DNA from: Laetmonice hystrix
Taxonomy: Eukaryota
Direction: 5' to 3'
Length of the DNA stretch: 64,000 nucleotides
NCBI GenBank assembly: GCA_965235115.1
Contig: OZ249440.1
Location: 17,112,001-17,176,000, forward strand
Shown: positions 22,321 to 52,461 of the stretch, piece by piece
Layout of the letters: each line of letters opens with the position of its first letter
Position numbering within the stretch: position 1 is the first letter of the stretch
The notes under the pieces: model-generated
Databases searched by the model: none
What the model was told of the DNA's origin: nothing
The model's input: the letters and a program-made list of their open reading frames with translations, nothing else
Position numbers and translations under genes: made by a program

Positions 22321-25300
22321 ACTTCATTGTGCCTACCCCAGAAACGCACCCTGCCTGCCCTTTTTCAATAGAAGATTGGAAACATGGAAGACATGAAAAA
22401 CTGCTAAGAATAGTTCTGTCAAGTCTTTCATAGATCGATGTTACATTGTTTTGTACACGGTTTGATGTCACAGCACTGACAACTATGACATGTGGGTCTG
22501 CCATCCTAAAGTGGCACAAGTAACCCAGTTAGGGAAGTCGTGTATTACTAATTATGTATTTGCTGGCACTGACTACCAGGTAGTCAGTGCCAGCATTGCC
22601 CGGATTTATCCGCCTTCTGACCTTCCCGACTTTTCCTACATTTGAATAAAATTTCCGCGCTCATACAAGTGCAAGCCTTTTTTCAAAGAAATGTTTTAAC
22701 AACACGGCACAGGAATGAGCCATGACACAGCAGTTGTGAAGAGAATCGTGAATCTTTAGATTTAGTGAAACAGAAAACGGCAAACATGTTGTTTACAAAT
22801 ATTTCACTCTACACCATATTCTTTCAGTTTCATCATCAATTCTTACGTGCTGTCATTTAAATTAGGTAAACTAGCATTCAGCTGTCACAGTGAAACAACG
22901 CATTACGCGTAAATTTATAGATGACCAACACGTGGACATGTGCAGCATTTTGAAGCACAGGGGTAGTATTCCTTCAGTTCAATGAGCAAACAGAAAACCT
23001 TGCCCTATTATTTATAAGAGTTTGGGACATATAGCCTCTTTAGTGGTGTGCTTCTAAACTTAGAAATTTGGACTACATTTTTCATCCACATATCATGAGA
23101 ATTCAGAGAAAGATAGAATTTTATATTTGCACCCAAAGCCAAGAAAGGGTTCATTATTTAAAGCTCATGACATCTGATTGTAGATCCTTTTTCTACCATT
23201 AAGACTCTATAAAGATGTTTTTTTTAAAATAAAAATTGAAATGCTAATGCAATGTACAGACCAGATGTAAATTATATCTAGGCCATCTACTGATACAGCC
23301 TGTTTTTTTCTCCCCATCCTAGGTCAGCCATCATAGATCAATGTACTATCATAGAGTGCAGTCTATATTTAGCCAAAGCCAGCCTGCCGCAAGAAACAAG
23401 CCTGTGGCGTTTTCTATTTTAAAATCTTTGAGGCTCCACCTCGACCTGCTTGACATTTTCTACTGACATTCAACTCGCTACGAAATCAATATTTACAAAT
23501 CTTTTGGATATATCTCATAATCTGCAGCATGACACTGACAACAAGATTCACACACAACGCAGCAATTTTATAGATTTGTCTAATGTATACCAATGCCAGA
23601 ATGGCAAATCAGCCAAAAAATGCTTAATGGTGCTCTTGAATTAAAAGAAGGGAGAAAAAGAAAATAAATCTGATCTCTCTCAATACAGACTGATCACTCT
23701 GCTGTTTTTCATCAATTGAGAAATAAACAAAATTATAGAAATCACGCCTACACCTTGGTTATTCTTGTAGCCCGAGTCGGCCTCGGAATACATAATATAT
23801 TTGTGTGCTTTGACAAAAATTCAAAATGCCTCACATGCCATCCTTAAAAAAAATGGTGGATTTATGTACCTCCTGGGGTATACTATAATGAAAGCTTTGC
23901 ATATTTTAAGAAGAGACATGAGTGCATAGATCTATTCAATGTTACTTCTTCATCAGTTTAAAAACAATCTACAATAATACTCTTCACAGAAACGCTTGCA
24001 TCGAGCCTTAATAAACAATAGAGAGTATCAAAATGGCACAAACTGGTTGTTTCAATGTATGTCTTTGAAAGAACACAGGAAGCTCTGTGAGTCATTCAGG
24101 ATGTTTGTATTCCCAAGATCATTTTTGTGAAAGAAAACTCTGGTTCAAGACCTGGACCACATCCGACATTATTCATGCTGAACTCAACTGGTTGCATGAC
24201 AGGTCACAGACTTCTTCATATCATTTGACACTGAACCTCTCCACTGGCATCAGACACCCGGACTTGAAACATTCAGTGGTGCAGGGCACATATTTTCGTT
24301 CCTTTGTTATGGTTGACTTTTCTATTGTTTGGTTGCTCCTGCGCAGTAGTGCTCTATCAACTTCCACTTCAAGGTGGTTCGATAGATGGGGCAAAGACCC
24401 ACCCCCCACCACCAAATTGGCGAGAATATTGTGGCGAGAATTCCTAGTGAAACACCTCCCGTTCCCTAGATCACCAGATTGGCGACGGTGTTGGCCAAAG
24501 TTGGCGAAAATCAACGTTAGTGAAACGCCTCCCAGGGACAACTAACGGTAATCTATTTATCGCTTGACCCTGAAATTTTAACATGGTGTCCCACTCTCCA
24601 GAAAGAGCTCGTTCACTTGATTCAATCTCTGCCACACGCTGGGTACTAGCGTTCGAGTGACCCCTGACCTGACCTAGAAATCCCCGACCGGAACAGCCGA
24701 ACATTGCCGAGCTTGAATCTCGGCTGCTCGATTTTGCCGAGGCACTCTTGTTGTTCACTTTTACGGCGCAGTCTGTCAGAATATATATGCCACATTTAAA
24801 TCTTCGGAGAAATCATCTGCAGCTGCTATGTTGAATGGAAGTACCTAGTCGGAAAGACCCGAAGTATTTCGAATCATCCCGAAATTGGCCAACTGACTTG
24901 CAAAGTTCTATAGCTGATTTCCCTCTGCAAACTTCTTAATATTTCACCAGATATTTCTCTTGTAGGGTGAATGTCACTTGTTATAATCTCGGTTTGGAGA
25001 TTTAACTTTATAGATCTATACCGGTACCATAAAGGGTGGCCGACTGAAAAAAAACAGGGTTAAACGCGTACCGGCCTGATTTTGCCCGTAAAAAGTCAGG
25101 TGTGGCAGACGGGTAGTGGAGCGAGCCCCTCTGCATTATGGGAGATTGATGGTGTTCCTAGGGTTCAAAGGTAAGTATCTGAGGAATTTTTGGTGTAACT
25201 TTAAAACAAACAGGGAATAATTCGCAAATTATGTTAAAGGCAGTAGTTATTTTGCCAAACTCTCAAAGGGCTATTCTGTCAGAACGAGATCTCCCTCTAC

Positions 25301-28040: not shown

Positions 28041-28196
28041 ATGGCGCATAAGTACAGAGAGGAGATCGTCGGAAAGAGATTTCTATCCGTTCGGAGCGCC
28101 TCGAAGTTGAAAACGAACAAAATATCGGAGTGGGAATGGCGGTCAGGAGTCGTTCGAGCAGTCACCCACAAAGATTCTTCTCATCCGGATATTTCG
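28041..28196 (+). CDS. KDM3: KDM3/JMJD1C-family JmjC histone demethylase, coding exon 1 (MAHKYREEIVGKRFLSVRSASKLKTNKISEWEWRSGVVRAVTHKDSSHPDIS)
   Basis: Matches the JMJD1C N-terminus pattern (R.E.VGKRFL.V ... WR.GV.RAV.H.DS..PD). It ends with TCG|gtaaga, a phase-0 donor at the equivalent position. Exon 2 (expected V.VEFD..W..REW) was not found in the window. Confidence 0.9.
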
Positions 28197-31100
28197 GTAA
28201 GATTTTCTCACGTTTTTACACTCAACGCTTGTATGTTGCTTACACAGTTTGATTCCCCAGGATCTCAGGATTCCAATAATGTACAGCTTTTCACTTTTGG
28301 TTCTTCCATTGCTATACTACAGAATAAAACGCGGAATAATGTCTCGTGTGTCAGCCTTGGCGAAACGTGTCCCATGCCATAGGCTTAGGCCTAATGTTTG
28401 TGTACTCGTCGGGCGGCAGCAGGCAGAAACTGCAGGCGCGCTGGCCACATTACATTTGGGGCTGGGTAGGGGGCTCTTGTCGTTGGGCAGCTTGCTGAGG
28501 TTGGGGACAAGCTCCATTGAATTCTGTGTAGATTTTCCAGACCTTTAATGTTTTAAAACTTACACAAAACACTATGTTTGGATGAAGAACGGTGTTGACA
28601 CTTGTGACTGGGAATTGAATTGGGATGAGTTTGTTGGGAATGGGATGGACGGGCCTGGGCCAATCATCCTGAGACTCGGCATGCTCAGCAGGGAGAGTGA
28701 GACGGGTAGAGCAAGTCGGGGAAGCCCAGCTCGGCTGACAGTGACAGTCAGTCAGACTCAGAGGAAGAATATCGGCAGACATTCAGATCGGCTCCAGCAC
28801 TCGGTTCAGGGGACTGAACTGATCTAGTTGGCTTGCTCAGGACTTTGCTTTATCCGTTGAATCTATCTTTATCAGGAATATATGAATGGTATTTAATTTA
28901 GGCTAGGGCCGTGGCGTTGGTTTTGTAAAGTAGGAATGGAAAGAGAAGCTGTCACTGTCAGTGATCTGAAGTCAAGATCTTCATGACTCTGTTGTAATCA
29001 CAGTAATGTAACTGCCTTCTGTTAGAGGCAACACCTACGCTACGGAATGACCTTAATCTACTTCTTTGTTCAATGTTGACTTTCAGCTGTAATCCTCACG
29101 CCTGAGATTAGGTTCATTCCAGTCAGGCTAATGTATCATTCAGATACACGTTCTCCTAGCCTATGGCCTATATTATAAGGCTATGCTCAATTTTTGGAGG
29201 AGAGAAAAAAAAATTGAAACCCTGACCTGAAGGGCAAAGGGGTTTAAAGGTTGCTGATCTTGACAAAAAGCACAAAAAGCACAAAATCTGCATGTACATG
29301 GTGCATCATGCACCTTTTATCTGTTGTACAGACATTATTTGTTGACTTTGAAACTCAGCTCTGGTGCATGTTCAGTTGTATGGTAGCACAAAATTTGTGG
29401 CATTCTTATTAGGTCTTGAATGTATGGATCCATTTGAAAATTGAGGGAATGATTCATATGAACTTTCACAGAAACTTTATTTCCTTCAAGAACTTCTTAA
29501 ATTCTTAAATTACATGTACATCTATAGTAGAATATGGATTCACGATTCCACTTCGACTTGCGTAAATCCTGCCAGAACTATGACTAGTCTTTGTATTAAT
29601 GACACATTCCGACAGTCAGGCTTTTTCCAGACAAACCTACCGGGGTAGTTTAGTTTTGTGAAGCAGGGTATTGCTGTCTTAACAAGTTTAATCAGGCAAT
29701 ACTTTGAAAAGGCTTGGAGTCTTCTCCAGGAAAGTTTCAGTGTTCATGAAAATGCTACATCGCAGTTAGTTGTGTTGGTCATCATACGTGTACCTATATC
29801 GGCAAAAGATTGCTGAACAAGAACTTGAGGAAGTCAGAAGTCTTTTAATGTTCCAGGTATTTTTACCAACTCGTAGTACTTATAGTTCAAGTGCTTGTCC
29901 TTACTTGCACAGCTTCTTAGAGAGGCACATCAACGTGTCCAGAAAAGGGTACACGTAATCCTTCCCAGAAAGGTGTTTGGGGACTACACAGCCGCAGGTG
30001 AAATTTATGGTATAGGTTTTTTTTCCTGAAAACTGGAAGTCATAATTTAAAGTATGCATCTGTGCTGCTCATGTATTAATACTAAATATTACTATGCTCT
30101 AGATTGTGATATTATCACATGGGAATGAAGTGAAGAATCAAGGAAGGGCATAAGACTATCGGTATTTTTGTCAGGCAAACTCATCAATCAGAAAAGGCCT
30201 TGTGTGAGCGGCATACATACATGTATGGAGTACCCTGCGTCATGAAATCGTTTAGACTACAAATTGACTTATAACTTGTTTTTTTCACTGTTTGAAGTCA
30301 AGACAGGAGTAGAGCCATCTAGAATTTATGTACATCTTCGCATACAAAGTTCTGTATTTTTCCACATGTCAGCAGGTCTAAAAGCTGAATGTGAACTTTT
30401 AAAACCAGTAAATTCAGATAGCCAGAAATGTGGTCCTAAGTCAACCAACCATGTTGATTCAAGTGACAAAGTCTGAACTGAAGCAAGGTAAACCGTAATC
30501 ATGTTTAGTTTATCCCAAACAGCATGCTCTATGCTCGGCAGAATTTTCAGCATCTGTACTCATGTCTGTCTCATAGGGATCACAATCGAAGACACGTGAG
30601 AAGGGAGTGGGTAAATTGCTTTTCTTTAAAAAGCTTTAGTGTGCAGCCATTGGCCCACCATTTTCATTAATTATCGGCTTAGCAGTCGAGGTCATCTTGA
30701 TAATATCGGCTAAAATGAAGTTTATTATAAAAATAAACAAGAAGAAGACAAACTGATATTCAAGCCTTTTCTTGTCAATACTCATCAGACATTTTAACTT
30801 AAGTTTTTGACCACTGCAGTTTCTTCGCCAAGAAGAGAGTTCAGAAAGTTTTCAAATTCAGCGTTTTAACAGTGCAATCTGAGGATCATCTGCAAAGATT
30901 ACGCATCCAAAAGGTTTAAGTTTATGAATGCAAGGCCACTGGCCTAGGGGACCAGCTGGTAGCCTGAAAATTATACAATAGACTTACAGAGACGAGTTTC
31001 ATTTACTCCAAACGACGACGTCTGATTTGACAGGCAGTAGCTTCACTTTTGAAGGATGATTTTTATTCTTTATGATAATTTGTCAGGGAAATCAATCACA

Positions 31101-36900: not shown

Positions 36901-39900
36901 ATGGGAGGGATATTATCAGGAAGTCGTGTTAGTCATCAGATTCAGAGAATTTAACCAGTCTGGCTTGATTACATTTTAAAAGGATTTTTGCCCAGGGTTG
37001 ATTTAATTTGTTTCAGTCTATCTAGATCAATTTAAGGAGGCGAGGGGAGTAATTATCAAGGGTTCATCACAATAGTGGCTTGTACAACACGAAACCCCAA
37101 GGCACGGATCCAACTCATGACCTACAGTTTATTTCGCCAAGTCCAAGTTTTTTGGTGTATTTTTTCATGTTCCAGGTAGGGGTGTTAGTAGGTAGCTTGT
37201 CCTGACCACAAGTTGGACTTAGCTACGCTATGTAATAAGCTACCAGCCACAGTTTGCTGGGCTACCACTGTGACAAATGGGTGCAATATCCTGGCAACGG
37301 CGGCCGGCCCGCCCACACTGATCGGCCATTACTGGGGGCGTGTAAACTGTACAAATCATTTCTAGTTTCTACTGTGGGGCTGTGGCCGGCCACTGACTAT
37401 ACCCCACGGGTCGGCCAGGTGAGGGCTTGGTCTGACCCAGCTACCAACGGCAACCGGGGCAGATCTGATCTCAGTCGTAATGGTTAAGTTTATGTGCACC
37501 ATGAATCAGGAGTAGATAAAATATTAACTTTGTGTTCAAAGTGAAATGTTTTTGTCTCTCCGATATCTTCTTGCTGTAGTGTCAGAAAAAACGTCTTATT
37601 AACTTGTCAATATTGAATAAGATCATTATTAAAGGGAAACGACTGTTTCGTTTGATGGGCTCAGTTTACGGGTGCATTCACTTCCTCAGGATTGGTTTCA
37701 CACACTGTCGTTCAGAGATAAATGGCATCAGAAATGAATGGGGGTTATGTAAGAGGCTGGGTTTGGGAGATCCTAATGTCTGACATTAGAAGTGTGGCCA
37801 TCGCTCAGGTTGAACCCATTAGGGCCAAGGTCGGAGGGCCAGGGAGGTCAGCCCGAGTTAGAGAGGCTGCAGCTATTGAGGCCAGTGGTCTATGGGATGT
37901 TCACTTGAGGGATGGAGAGATGGGGACGATTTGACATTGAAGGACATCAGTCATCTGACTGAAGGGCGGCAGCTAGGGGGGGGGAGGGCGGATCCCCGTT
38001 TTAATCTGGGCACCCGGCGCTGGCCAGGAAGGGTCCGGCGGCCCCGGTATGCTCAGCGGCCGCCGCCTGTCCCAGTCGGGCGTGGGACCCTCGGCAGGGG
38101 TAGGTTGTGTGGGGTGTTGGGGAGGGGCGGGGGCTGAACTAGGAGATTGGATCCAGAACGTCCTGCAGTAAGAATCAATACACGAGCAGCAATTTTGTGC
38201 GGGAAATAATCTCAGAAAGAAAAGCTCCTTATCTTGTGTCCGCAATGCCCTGAGATGTTTGAGGACTGAGGAGTAGAATTAAAGGAGCTCTTGGCCTTGC
38301 TCGCCGGCCTACACGTTGTGAAATTACGGCTGCGGTAATGCGCGGTTTGATATTCTCATTAGGAAGTGAGTGGTGACTGACTGTCCTCCGTTTGACCCCG
38401 GTGTAAAATGGTATGCTTGTTCCCAGCCCATAACTTGTTGTCACGCTTTCGTATATAGTTTGAGGCGCTTTACAATCTGTAGTTCACATCATTTATAGTG
38501 GGCCTAATTTTATGTAAATTTGATTAGTGTTGAGCGTTTCCTTGAAGGCAGAATTGCCCTGCCCAAGGTATGTAGAAAGTCACAATTTACGGTAAACCAC
38601 GATTTACATAATTTTCAGATATTTTTTGCGCCCAAATCTACTTGCAATTAATAAATGTTTGAAATGAAAAGTTGGGAACACTGATTAAAAAGTTAAAAGT
38701 ACAACTGGAGCTTCCAACTGGTCCCAAGACGAAGCAATTTCAGCCTGATTAAAACGACAGTCCTAGATTTCCTTATGACAAACGTTGTTCCAACTCGCCC
38801 AGTAGAAATCCTACTGTTTTTAGTGTAGATTACTTTCAGAACCTGCAAGGGATATTATGTTGAAGAACCTACATGGTGAAAGACTGGTGAAAGTCGTGAT
38901 CCCAGTTTGTTCATGAATGCCTAGAATGCCCCCCCCCCCATTCCCCAGTGGACCGGCTGGGACGTCCTGGGCTGGGCTGCAAACACCTGGTTCTGGGACC
39001 GGGCGTGTTGGACTGTTGTGTTAGCCCGTGATAGGCCTGTATTAGCCTCAATTTAGGTTTGCTAAAGAGAGAAGGCGGGGGGGGGGGAGATTATCAGGAA
39101 GGGTTACCGTTAGGGTAAGCAGTGGTAGAATAGGCTAATCCCGGTGAGAGAGGTTGCCGACAATTTCCACCAGTCTGAGGATTGACCTAATGATTATAAC
39201 GGATGGATTAATGTATTTCTAACATCAGTGTTCCCACAGATGTCCGGGACCCGCGCTGTGATCTTTGGGTACCCACAGGCCACACATACACGTAACTGGG
39301 TGTTTATTAGTGAATAACGTCCGACATTATTTATTTGTGTGAGACGGATTGTGTTAACCTTGCGTCATCCTGGTAAGTGGGTAAACTCTGTGGGCCTCGG
39401 CTGTGCCAGCATACTCGCTGAGGTTCTGGGACAGCTGGCTGGGTTGTGGTTTGACTGGCTGAGCCCATGACCAATGTGCTAACTTTATGTCATCCTAGGG
39501 GGGAAATCTGGAGAAGACGAGAATAATTTGGGATAGTGTGCATGGCTCAATGGAACTGTTTATCTGCTACATTGTTAGGAGTGTGTTTGTGAACTTTGGA
39601 TGAGATGTGTTCTGGTTGATTGACAGGGTTGTCCAATAAATCGACACCCTTACAATCAGCTGGGAAACGTGGAGCCCTGTAACTGTTTAATCTGGGCAAC
39701 CGGGCAGTCATGTCAAATGGTGATCTCCAGTACAGCACCGAGTTTGATTGCCGAATAATGCACTGTTTGCACCAGGACGGCCCGTGTTGTGTTGTGGTGT
39801 ATGTAGGCGGAGGCGGAGACAGAAAGCAGGGTAATGAGGACTTGGTGAAGGATACATTGAGTACTCGCATGACAGACAACGATTAGCTGTGGATGTTGAG

Positions 39901-43240: not shown

Positions 43241-43271
43241 TATTCTCTCCTTTGATCTGTTACAGGTAAGT
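43241..43271 (+). other. Candidate recursive splice site RS1 in KDM3 intron 1
   Basis: tattctctcctttgatctgttaCAG|GTAAGT: polypyrimidine tract and acceptor immediately followed by a consensus donor (junction 43265/43266). Confidence 0.5.
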
Positions 43272-48687: not shown

Positions 48688-48925
48688 GTGAACAGACTGG
48701 TCTGTCAGGAGAGTGAACAGGCTATCATGATGGTGAACAGTCTGTCAGGGGAGTGAACAGGCTGCCATAGCAGTGGACAGGCTGTCATGGTAAACAGGCT
48801 GCAAAGGGAGTGAACAGGCTGTCGTGGTGGTGAACAGGCTGTCGTGGTGGTGAACAGGCTGTCGTGGTGGTGAACAGGCTGTTGTGGTGGTGAGCAGGAT
48901 GTCAGGGGAGTGAACAGGCTGTCAT
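48688..48925. repeat. 20-bp degenerate tandem repeat
   Basis: Recurring GTGAACAGGCTGTCGTGGTG. Confidence 0.85.
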
Positions 48926-49677
48926 GGTGGGACTGAGATCCGCATACTCTACCCTCTGTCCAGTCTCGATCATCCAGACCCTCAGCGGCTCGTACAGCAA
49001 GAGAGTCGGGTGTGAAACTGCCCTCTGTAGAACTATACAACAAATTTAAATACCTCCACATAGCACAAACAAGTGCCTTACTTTTGTCTATACTGTATTA
49101 CACTATAATATAAGAGATTAGATAAGAGAAGATGTACTCTGACAGAGATTAGAAGTGGAAGTGGCTGCAAACGGCAACAGTGGTCTGATGGAACCTGACT
49201 ATCACTAGTATCAGGCTACAAATCGAGATCTCGTGACGGGACCCATTCATTATACGGCGAGCCCTACTCTGACCTCAGCCCGTATTAATAGGACCGGGCG
49301 GCCGTATAGTGCGGCTAATGCACTTATTGCCTGCTAGTTCTGGCCACCAGAAAATGATAGGGTGTTGTAATGTACCAGCAGTAAATAAAAGAGCGGATTT
49401 TTGTTAATGCTGACAAAGCAACTAAGGTGATTATCGGTTGTAACAGTTGTATTGTGACTGGCAGGAGTTCAATAGTTCTGCCTTTAGTGAGACGGGTTGG
49501 TGGGTGGAGATTGGGTACAATTACGGGCGTATATAGTGGGCCTCATTCCTGCTATATTAAATTCAAAGAGGCAAACACTTTACGATATTTTAGTCAGTGG
49601 TCGCCTTTAGGCTGCTTGATTTACAAACTGTTCACACGGTCAGATCTGATGATTTACAGACTGGAGGTGCCGCTTTA

Positions 49678-49975
49678 TGCCTGCCTCATACTACACGATT
49701 TTCTAATGATACAAGTATATGTGAGACAGAACAAGTTTTCAACATGTTGAAAGTTTTCTGTCATATGACAACCTGTCTTGTGTCGTAGACCAAAAATCGT
49801 GCTGTGAAAAATCCAAGAGAATCCGTGTATATCGGAGGAAATCGTGTGATACAAAGTTATCGTAGGAAATTGCAGGAAATCGTGGAGTGTGAGGACGCCT
49901 GTCATACAATTATACACAACAAAAATTTTGGCCTGATACATTCACAGTTCAAAATCATGTAGTGTGAGGCAGGCT
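49678..49975. mobile_element. PIF/Harbinger-type (Tourist-like) MITE
   Basis: TIRs (T)GCCTGCCTCATACTACACGATTTT and AAAATCATGTAGTGTGAGGCAGGCT; TTA TSD at 49675-49677 and 49976-49978; an internal degenerate TIR copy near 49880-49900. Confidence 0.82.
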
Positions 49976-51467
49976 TTAGAGTAAGAGGGACAAAGGCTGG
50001 ATTCATACTTCTTATTCCAGAAAATACGTATGTCAAAAGGATTACGTAAACTTCTATATTTGTTGATTTCGCTAGCAATCGATGGCTTTCATATTTTGGG
50101 ACGGACACTGCAGCGACTATAAGAAGCATCTTGCAATATTCAGATCTTTTCATGACAGCATTGTACCAGCGAATTCGAAAATCAAAAAACGTGTGTAACA
50201 TTAAAGGATGAAAACCCATTGTCACATGAATGAACCGAATTCATTTTGGTTTAAAATCAATTCAAGCAATGAAAAAAAACCCCAACAAATTCTGAAGTTC
50301 TGGCATTGCATTCTTGCCTTATCAGAGTTCCACACTTTTTAGCCCAAATCTAGGCGTCCTAGTTGTATTTCATCACTTGGTATTAACCGAAATGAATCCC
50401 CAAGTGAACGATGGAGATGATTGGTTACACCCCGATATAACGGTCAGATGGCGGTATGTGACAATATGAGAGCGGGTCAGGTGAGATTAACCCTGTGGTG
50501 GTCGTGGAGATCATGTGGATAAAACAATGGGTTGTGAACAGAGAAAGGTGGTGTGAGAACTCAATGAGAGCTGGTGATCTGGTCACGTCTCCTATAGTTC
50601 ACCGGGATGTGGGCACGGTAGGCCGTGGGATGAGGAAGGGGTCGGTCATCATGTTTACTGTACGTGTCGTCGTCTGTCTGTCCCTCCCGAGGGTGCTCCG
50701 AGCACTCCCAGCCCGACCAACCGACCGGCCCCCGAGTCGGACAGCCCGCAGTCGGTTGGTCACCGCTGGCCCTCCGACCTGGGCAATCTTGGTAGTGCGG
50801 GAGTTTTTCAATCAGAAAACTCTTCTTGGAATACAAATGACAAGGTCACATGGCCAGGACATCTCTAAAGACAAGTGGTGTACTTGAACTAAGTTGAAGG
50901 ACCCAAACCATTCTTTACCAGGCTACAATTTGTATTTCATAATTTGTTGCAACTACCGGTACAAAATTATGTCAAACAGTGACGATCGACTGTTTGTCTA
51001 TGTTTCCAGAGAACATGTCTTGCATTTGAAGTTCAGGTTGAAAGCTGTCAGATGTAACCGTTAACTGCACCTGTAATTGGTTCAATACTTTCTTTGCCTT
51101 ACATTATAAATCATTTATGTCATTAACCATACGTTTATGTATTATTCCACGTTTAAGTTAAAAATGTATTTATATGAAAGTTTTTTTAGGTAGATTTCCA
51201 TAGTTCCAGGAGGAATATTGAGTAATTACGACAATATGTAATGTTCACTGTGGACGGAAAATTCGACTCTTTCCCTTTTTTTTTTGCCGTTACCAGGGAA
51301 ATCATGTAGGAAGTTTGCTGATTCACAGGAACAATTAAACAAGTTAGCATGGACATATTTGATGTGTTCTTGAATCTGTTAAGTTCCTAGAAACCTGTCA
51401 ACATGTTACTTCCTTTCCTGTGATGAAGGCTGTGTAAACTTTGAAATGGCTGTTTTAATGTAATGAG

Positions 51468-51503
51468 TAACTAACCAGTAATCTGTTGTGTTTTCAGGTA
51501 AGT
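51468..51503 (+). other. Candidate recursive splice site RS2 in KDM3 intron 1
   Basis: aCTAACcagtaatctgttgtgttttCAG|GTAAGT: branch-point-like CTAAC, U-rich tract, acceptor and consensus donor (junction 51497/51498); downstream donor CAG|GTGAGG at 51585/51586. Confidence 0.55.
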
Positions 51504-52314
51504 TGACGTTTCCTACTATCGTCTAAAGGTGGTGTACGGGTCTGTACCAGGGACGGGCTGGAGTGGATCGTCTTGTCACTGACAGGTGAGGTGGGGAGAC
51601 TGGGTGATGGCAGTCTCCTGTTTGACGGCCTTTAATGGCATCATTATAGTGTCATTGTAACATCAGGCACAGATGTGACGGATAGAACATTATCTACTGC
51701 TATATTACAGTAGAAAGTTAATCTATTGTGTCAGGCGAAAGGAGAGTTGAGAAAGGTGTAGTGTTAAAGGCCCGGAGGCTGATTAAGACAATCTTCGAAG
51801 TGCCAGGCCCAGGTTACTCAGTAGGCAGGTCGCTCGTGGCAATTAACTATTTTTATGATGGTTGAAAAAGTTTGAAATGGCGAATTTCAAGGTGAACGGT
51901 GCATGGAGGCCAAAGATAAAATAGCTAATGAAGCTGCCATGTTTAGCTGATTTTCTCGTTGAAGACTTTTTGAGCACTGCCGGTGAGGTCTCTGAACTGA
52001 GTTTGTTTGGTTACCTTCCAGCCATTGCTGTCATGAATTTGAAGTTTTACTAAAGTCAAATGACTTAATATTGTGAAGTAATTTAGGTTAATTAAGAGGT
52101 GGGTTGGTTAGATGTGTACTCTCATTGTCGAGGTTGAGAATTTTATGCCTTAGTGTAGGAAGGTGAAACAATCGATACGAGGTGGCTGAGACCGTGATGT
52201 GAGAATTTAGTGGTACTGTGACTAAGTATTTCAGATTGTGTAATCGGTCAAGATAATGGCAAAGTTGACCATCCGTTTAGATCAATAGATGTGACAAAAT
52301 CATTGCAACAAATT

Positions 52315-52461
52315 CCACTCAGTGGATACATTCTCAAAGGCAAAATTAGCTACTTTCTATGCTCCACTCAGTGGATACATTCTCAAAGGCAAAATTAGCT
52401 ACTTTCTATGCTCCATTCAGTGGATACATTCTCAAAGGCAAAATTAGCTACTTTCTATGCT
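52315..52461. repeat. 49-bp tandem repeat, 3 units
   Basis: Unit CCACTCAGTGGATACATTCTCAAAGGCAAAATTAGCTACTTTCTATGCT. Confidence 0.95.

Follow-up and report, generated by a model that had tools for sequence, protein, structure and literature searches.

To our knowledge, flies and vertebrates are the only animals for which experiments have demonstrated recursive splicing. Drosophila ratchet points with cryptic RS-exons were reportedly described by Burnette 2005, Duff 2015, Joseph 2018 and 2021 and Pai 2018 (PMC6110457), and vertebrate RS-exons reportedly by Sibley 2015 and Blazquez 2018. As far as we know, few vertebrate cases have been found in long introns, and the genes affected are neuronal adhesion genes; we know of no KDM3 gene, i.e. 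no gene for this H3K9 demethylase, among them. Poison exons in the classical sense are defined by their observed regulated inclusion and are often ultraconserved.

Ratchet points in flies combine a tandem acceptor and donor with a short, out-of-frame cryptic exon in a long intron (PMC8605326). For vertebrate RS-exons, exon definition comes first, the regenerated donor and the RS-exon donor then compete, and inclusion leads to a premature stop and NMD (PMC6224609). Shepard 2009 compared the frequency of RP sites on the sense strand of introns >50 kb with that on the complementary strand and found a 22-fold excess in fly and an 8-fold excess in sea urchin; the study covered insects and sea urchin and included no lophotrochozoan (PMC2773006). 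Our literature search revealed no paper that ties recursive splicing to annelids, molluscs, Lophotrochozoa or KDM3.

Here we describe RS2, a candidate ratchet point with a candidate 88-nt RS-exon in the first intron of a KDM3 gene, together with three similar sites of the same intron. The window is the whole stretch of 64,000 nucleotides that was analysed; positions beyond its end are given in window-extended coordinates.

The KDM3 gene and its first intron

28041 to 28196, + strand: KDM3 coding exon 1, with the ATG at 28041, 52 codons, a phase 0 end and the donor TCG|GTAAGA at 28196/28197
28197 to 92531 (window-extended coordinates), + strand: whole intron 1, 64,335 nt; the part within the window is 28197 to 64000

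Searching exon 1 against Pfam showed a match to positions 1-44 of the 60 positions of DUF7030 (PF22989; E 1.4e-19), which is the N-terminal domain of KDM3 proteins. Positions 44-60 of PF22989 and positions 1-30 of PF22988 (PWWP_KDM3B) matched C5:17204526-17204699, and exon 2 lies 28.5 kb past the window end. The acceptor of exon 2, ttttgcttttttcgtttattccag|GTACTG (junction L004:8531/8532), has an acceptor score of 8.5. Alignment of the exon 1 and exon 2 product with a KDM3-like protein of the mollusc Pomacea was gapless over the junction (59% identity, E 2e-41), which shows that no coding exon is missing between the two. Intron 1 is a true, uninterrupted coding intron of KDM3. The initial annotation had put it at over 35 kb; with exon 2 found outside the window, this figure had to be replaced by 64,335 nt. 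Further downstream, tudor exons were found at +109 kb and +116 kb and the JmjC exon 172 kb from exon 1. An unbroken run of ~28 G (L004:8813-8840) was noticed directly after exon 2, ~120 nt into intron 2.

Architecture of RS2

51277 to 51296, + strand: competing strong acceptor (T9 tract, ccag|GGAAAT), score 8.5, 201 nt upstream of RS2
51471-51475, + strand: branch-point-like CTAAC, branch A at 51474, 23 nt 5' of the RS2 AG
51479 to 51497, + strand: U/G-rich tract and acceptor CAG of RS2, acceptor score 2.3
51495-51503, + strand: CAG|GTAAGT of RS2, junction 51497/51498
51498 to 51503, + strand: GTAAGT, the donor that RS2 would regenerate, reading TCG|GTAAGT once joined to exon 1
51498 to 51585, + strand: candidate RS-exon of 88 nt; stops occur in each of the three frames, in phase 0 as TGA at codon 3
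51583 to 51591, + strand: RS-exon donor CAG|GTGAGG, junction 51585/51586, PWM score 11.4, U1 duplex -11.6 kcal/mol

The CTAAC, the tract and the two junctions had been reported in the initial annotation and were found to be correct to the base; the 88-nt spacing and the phase 0 read-in GTA AGT TGA were confirmed as well, exon 1 having 52 codons and ending in phase 0. Between 51482 and 51495 the tract contains 11 pyrimidines among 14 nucleotides, three G and zero A. A single AG (51477-78) intervenes between branch A and the RS2 AG, and at 3-4 nt it is too near to branch A to be usable. The RS2 acceptor is moderate, with a score of 2.3 vs 7.3-8.5 for RS1, RS3 and exon 2, and belongs to the top 3.8% of AG dinucleotides in control DNA.

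RS2 thus has a tract and YAG acceptor directly abutting a consensus GTRAGT donor, as expected for a ratchet point. It lies on the sense strand of an intron that is tens of kb long, and a downstream donor at +88 nt bounds a short, stop-containing cryptic exon. A donor at least as strong as CAG|GTGAGG is found 30-150 nt downstream of 1.4% of sense positions of the intron and of 0.2% of antisense positions. At RS1, RS3 and RS4 the downstream donors are weak, or none exceeds the cut-off; RS2 alone has a near-perfect one.

As every frame is interrupted by stops, the 88 nt are excluded as a coding exon, whatever the phase. Their GC content is 52%, vs 36% in the 300 nt upstream. Such a GC-richer segment might belong, as an exon, to a nested or non-coding + strand transcript that lies within the KDM3 intron and is unrelated to KDM3, and long introns frequently host transcripts of this kind; however, no Rfam family was detected in 28000-64000, nine nearby ORFs contained no Pfam domain, and the stops in all frames of the 88 nt also argue against it. 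We consider this origin, which the initial annotation had named as a finding that would speak against its model, highly improbable.

Three contig sets that cover the RS2 stretch are DNA-like, derive from one sample and contain variants on both sides of RS2. Among the variants listed, none falls into 51410-51608, the nearest being an 8-nt insertion after 51409 and a G>C exchange at 51609; at ~1 variant per 94 nt, a variant-free gap of 199 nt has a P of about 0.12 and is not significant. In the surroundings of the site, word depth in the contigs rises from ~45 to values of several hundred or several thousand at 48797-48993 and 49585-49978, where many loose ends occur as well. These two segments, situated 1.5-2.7 kb 5' of RS2, resemble interspersed repeats of high copy number. 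On the other side, 0.8 kb 3' of RS2, a 49-nt unit is repeated x3.0 with 98% identity (52314-52461).

A series of four sites in intron 1

Both strands of the whole intron 1 were scanned with a generic acceptor plus donor score. Its weights are textbook frequencies; it was used for ranking only, and the null was scored identically. The following sites were ranked highest:

37175/37176, + strand: fifth juxtaposition, ttccag|GTAGGG, combined score 12.3, with a weak donor
43241 to 43271, + strand: RS1, ctattctctcctttgatctgttacag|GTAAGT, junction 43265/43266, combined score 16.4, which exceeds the 99th percentile of the maxima seen in shuffles
51497, + strand: RS2, combined score 11.4
70075 (L002:6075/6076), + strand: RS3, combined score 17.0
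80916 (L003:6916/6917), + strand: RS4, donor GTGAGT, combined score 11.3

All five sites with a score of at least 11.3 lie on the sense strand (5 sense vs 0 antisense), and the best antisense site of intron 1 reached 8.7. A full GTRAGT is present at four of the sites, and these divide the intron into 15,069, 8,232, 18,578, 10,841 and 11,615 nt. They are spaced more evenly than four random points (P = 0.036 for the maximal and P = 0.016 for the minimal segment). Steps of about 15 kb, 8 kb and over 12 kb had been proposed initially; the first two were retained, and the remainder amounts to 41 kb with two more sites. A CTRAC branch motif is present 18-25 nt 5' of RS2, RS3 and RS4, in the form of CTGAC in RS3 and RS4.

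Each of the sites RS1-RS4 is single copy in the genome. A repeat or transposon origin of the sites was therefore rejected, and the concern that RS2 might be part of a repeat was not borne out.

Near the fifth juxtaposition, a CAG|GTGAGG occurs at 37418/37419, 243 nt after 37175/37176, with a phase 0 stop at codon 10. This region (37156-37427) lies 9 kb into the intron and may form an additional exon of the cryptic or poison type. Strong sense donors AG|GTAAGT that have no abutting pyrimidine tract were seen at 25170/71, which is 2.9 kb 5' of exon 1, and at the extended positions 68214/15 and 85525/26 (spans: window 25163-25176; L002:4213-4220; L004:1524-1531). Either alternative first exons or recruitment of U1 could account for them.

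Donor-like 9-mers that match or exceed CAG|GTGAGG in strength were counted in intron 1 on both strands (8 sense vs 1 antisense), and three of the eight (37419, 68215, 85526) have no abutting acceptor. This distribution would also be compatible with RS2 as a U1-binding or decoy element, at which U1 snRNP is recruited against premature cleavage and polyadenylation or for intron definition and no catalysis takes place. Such an element would leave the abutting tract, the CAG and the branch motif at 4/8 of the 9-mers unexplained, and we regard it as a very unlikely explanation of RS2, although part of the sense-strand donor excess may reflect U1 recruitment and not splicing.

Chance expectation of the sites

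In 400 dinucleotide-preserving shuffles of the intron, a mean of 0.415 sites reached a score of at least 11.3, and the observed number of 5 was reached in 0/400. In 20 arbitrarily chosen 10-kb stretches of this genome, scanned on both strands (400 kb), 3 sites had a score of at least 11.3, none of them with a GTRAGT donor. These random pieces were combined with 184 kb of local sequence (the antisense strand of the intron and both flanks) to a control strand of 584 kb. It contains 12 AGGTRAGT octamers, the best of which has an acceptor score of -1.8, so that 0/12 reach 2.3; on the sense strand of the intron, 4/6 octamers have an acceptor of at least 2.3. As 3.8% of AG dinucleotides reach this score, 0.05 GTRAGT sites with such an acceptor are expected per intron, and four were seen (P = 2.6e-7); the cut-off of 2.3 is RS2's own score and thus mildly circular, and an a-priori cut-off at the top 5% of acceptors gave the same result.

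Within the series, RS2 belongs to the two weaker sites, and it is rare once the full GTRAGT donor is required, not on its combined score alone. It might be a functionless CAGGTAAGT that happens to lie behind a T/G-rich stretch, with RS1 and RS3 maybe being real ratchet points. For CAGGTAAGT the expectation is 0.73 per 64-kb window on both strands; 3 copies were found on the sense strand of intron 1 and none elsewhere, on either strand, in 124 kb. Combined scores of the rank of RS2 are reached by chance ~0.4-0.5 times per 64-kb strand, in shuffles as well as in random pieces of the genome. Moreover, the 12-mer TTTYAGGTAAGT showed no enrichment genome-wide, with 286 matches vs 326 for the reversed control. 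Against a chance motif stand the drop of the expectation to 0.05 per intron under the full GTRAGT requirement, the background of 1.4% for a strong donor at +88, the presence of a branch motif, and the position on the sense strand with three similar sites alongside. A chance origin of RS2 thus appears quite unlikely to us; very probably, the RS2 sequence is a feature under selection.

When the halves of TTTYAGGTAAGT were set 5 nt apart, 146 matches were obtained genome-wide, so the abutting form is at most 2-fold in excess. Genome-wide counts of Y8NYAGGTAAGT gave 102 matches vs 64 for the reversed control; ~33 of the 102 lie inside two tandem arrays. Genome-wide counts do not show the signal; it becomes visible only in its context, the sense strand of long introns.

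The two arrays are located at G000:C1:19017247-19018041 (16 copies) and G000:C12:26313684-26316377 (~17 copies) and contain a pyrimidine run and YAGGTAAGT in each unit, so that genome-wide motif counts are inflated by them. In a further array, at C3:533773-534477, TTTCAGGTAAGT occurs every 99 nt. Clusters of Y8NYAG|GTAAGT on one strand were observed twice on C3, with three matches in 56 kb (G000:C3:8365605-8421780, + strand) and two in 70 kb (G000:C3:30686283-30756133, - strand). From the ~71 matches outside arrays, ~0.8 pairs within 100 kb are expected. Both clusters are likely to represent further multi-site long introns.

Intron 1 of a relative was available in one long contig (ENA ERZ21939214, ctg11872l), the sole one of this kind. 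Its exon 1 is 76% identical and its donor TCG|GTAAGA is the same as here; its exon 2 likewise starts with GTAC (contig position 30592/30593, L008:10001-10162). The intron between them, read within 57 kb of contig followed from exon 1, measures 20,436 nt vs 64,335 nt here and contains no RS-like site. A short, site-free intron in the relative fits with RS-like sites accompanying very long introns; it is uninformative for RS2 itself and lends it no support by conservation.

Possible competition between the regenerated and the RS-exon donor

Since exon 1 ends in TCG, splicing to RS2 would regenerate the donor TCG|GTAAGT, and for the same reason all regenerated donors in intron 1 would be sub-optimal. 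For TCG|GTAAGT we obtained a PWM score of 8.8 and a predicted duplex with the U1 5' end of -9.3 kcal/mol, which makes it weaker than CAG|GTGAGG; as the donor PWM consists of textbook frequencies, the comparison of the two donors is approximate. The stronger of the two donors in flies and mammals is usually that of the ratchet point, and its weakening turns cryptic RS-exons into included ones (PMC8605326). Relative donor strength predicts the outcome only partly (PMC8605326). In silent ratchet points the regenerated donor is typically, though not in an absolute sense, the stronger of the two. At RS2 the RS-exon donor is predicted to be stronger, and inclusion of the 88 nt is thus a live possibility.

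With sub-optimal regenerated donors and a near-perfect downstream donor only at RS2, the RS-exon may be included at a substantial and regulated rate. An RS-exon donor that is predicted to outscore the reconstituted one gives a hint toward a poison-exon switch. In this reading, a ratchet point would have been turned from a silent intermediate into a quantitative switch, with RS2 as a poison-exon checkpoint that sets KDM3 dosage in a lophotrochozoan; we regard it as possible but unlikely.

The same donor relation would also suit a conventional cassette or poison exon that enters some KDM3 transcripts, triggers decay and involves no re-splicing, the abutting tract being incidental. Such an exon could comprise the 88 nt (51498-51585) or 201 nt (51297-51497), the latter with the T9 acceptor at 51296 and the CAG|GTAAGT of RS2 as an ordinary donor. 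The acceptor at 51296 scores 8.5 vs 2.3 for RS2's own, and every candidate exon is filled with stops. However, the exact juxtaposition of acceptor and GTRAGT, which RS2 has in common with three other evenly spaced sites, would be left unexplained, and CTAAC lies at the ideal distance for the acceptor at 51497. We therefore regard a conventional exon as unlikely.

RS2 as a candidate recursive splice site

Overall, we consider it reasonably probable that RS2 in KDM3 intron 1 acts as a ratchet point (recursive splice site) and is accompanied by a cryptic RS-exon, and intron 1 is probably removed stepwise as in flies. The recursive-site model with an RS-exon, as put forward in the initial annotation, is backed by the architecture and by four evenly spaced, single-copy sense sites beyond chance, and it is weakened by the RS-exon donor being predicted as the stronger one, by the moderate acceptor of RS2 with a much stronger one 201 nt upstream, by a combined score that is not rare by chance, and by the missing enrichment of short motif versions in genome-wide counts.

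From the sequence anatomy, the gene structure, the four-site series and its statistics, all of them shown here, we infer the following use in splicing. Exon definition of the 88-nt segment 51498-51585 would come first, based on the acceptor at 51497, with branch A 51474, and the donor at 51586. Exon 1 would then be ligated to 51498, directly or after a step at RS1; the upstream 8-23 kb would leave as a lariat, and TCG|GTAAGT would be recreated. Normally, the regenerated donor would pair with the next site, and removal would proceed via RS3 and RS4 to exon 2; with the regenerated donor used in this way, the 88 nt would be absent from the mRNA. If the RS-exon donor wins instead, the mRNA would be extended by 88 nt whose third codon is a stop, encode a stub of 54 residues and probably be degraded.

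A four-site series in a conserved chromatin-regulator gene would provide a compact locus for the mechanism in a third major animal lineage. The stronger predicted RS-exon donor, an unusual trait of RS2, would make the site naturally suited to examine the donor-competition model in a non-model organism.

Comparison with known systems

RS2 most likely represents a known mechanism in a lineage without an earlier demonstration of recursive splicing. The closest resemblance is to the ratchet points of Drosophila, which share with RS2 the Yn-CAG|GTAAGT consensus, the tandem acceptor|donor arrangement and the location in a very long intron, often the first of its gene, on the sense strand. As in KDM3 intron 1, several sites occur per intron, with segments of ~8-19 kb. 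The RS-exons of Drosophila are, like that predicted at RS2, short, out-of-frame, stop-containing and closed by a downstream donor. There are also differences. The host here is a lophotrochozoan-type invertebrate and thus belongs to a different phylum. For fly RS-exons a length of ~50 nt is stated, whereas the sequence predicts a somewhat longer exon of 88 nt here. In flies the ratchet-point donor is generally the stronger one, whereas at RS2 the RS-exon donor is predicted to be stronger.

As in NMD-coupled poison exons, inclusion of the 88-nt exon would, in silico, place a stop 2 codons past exon 1; the classical members of this group are, however, defined by observed inclusion, whereas the stop considered here was read from the sequence. 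With vertebrate RS-exons, the model for RS2 has in common that exon definition comes first, that two donors compete and that inclusion results in a premature stop. For KDM3 intron 1, as for the predictions of Shepard 2009, the evidence consists of an excess of sites on the sense strand.
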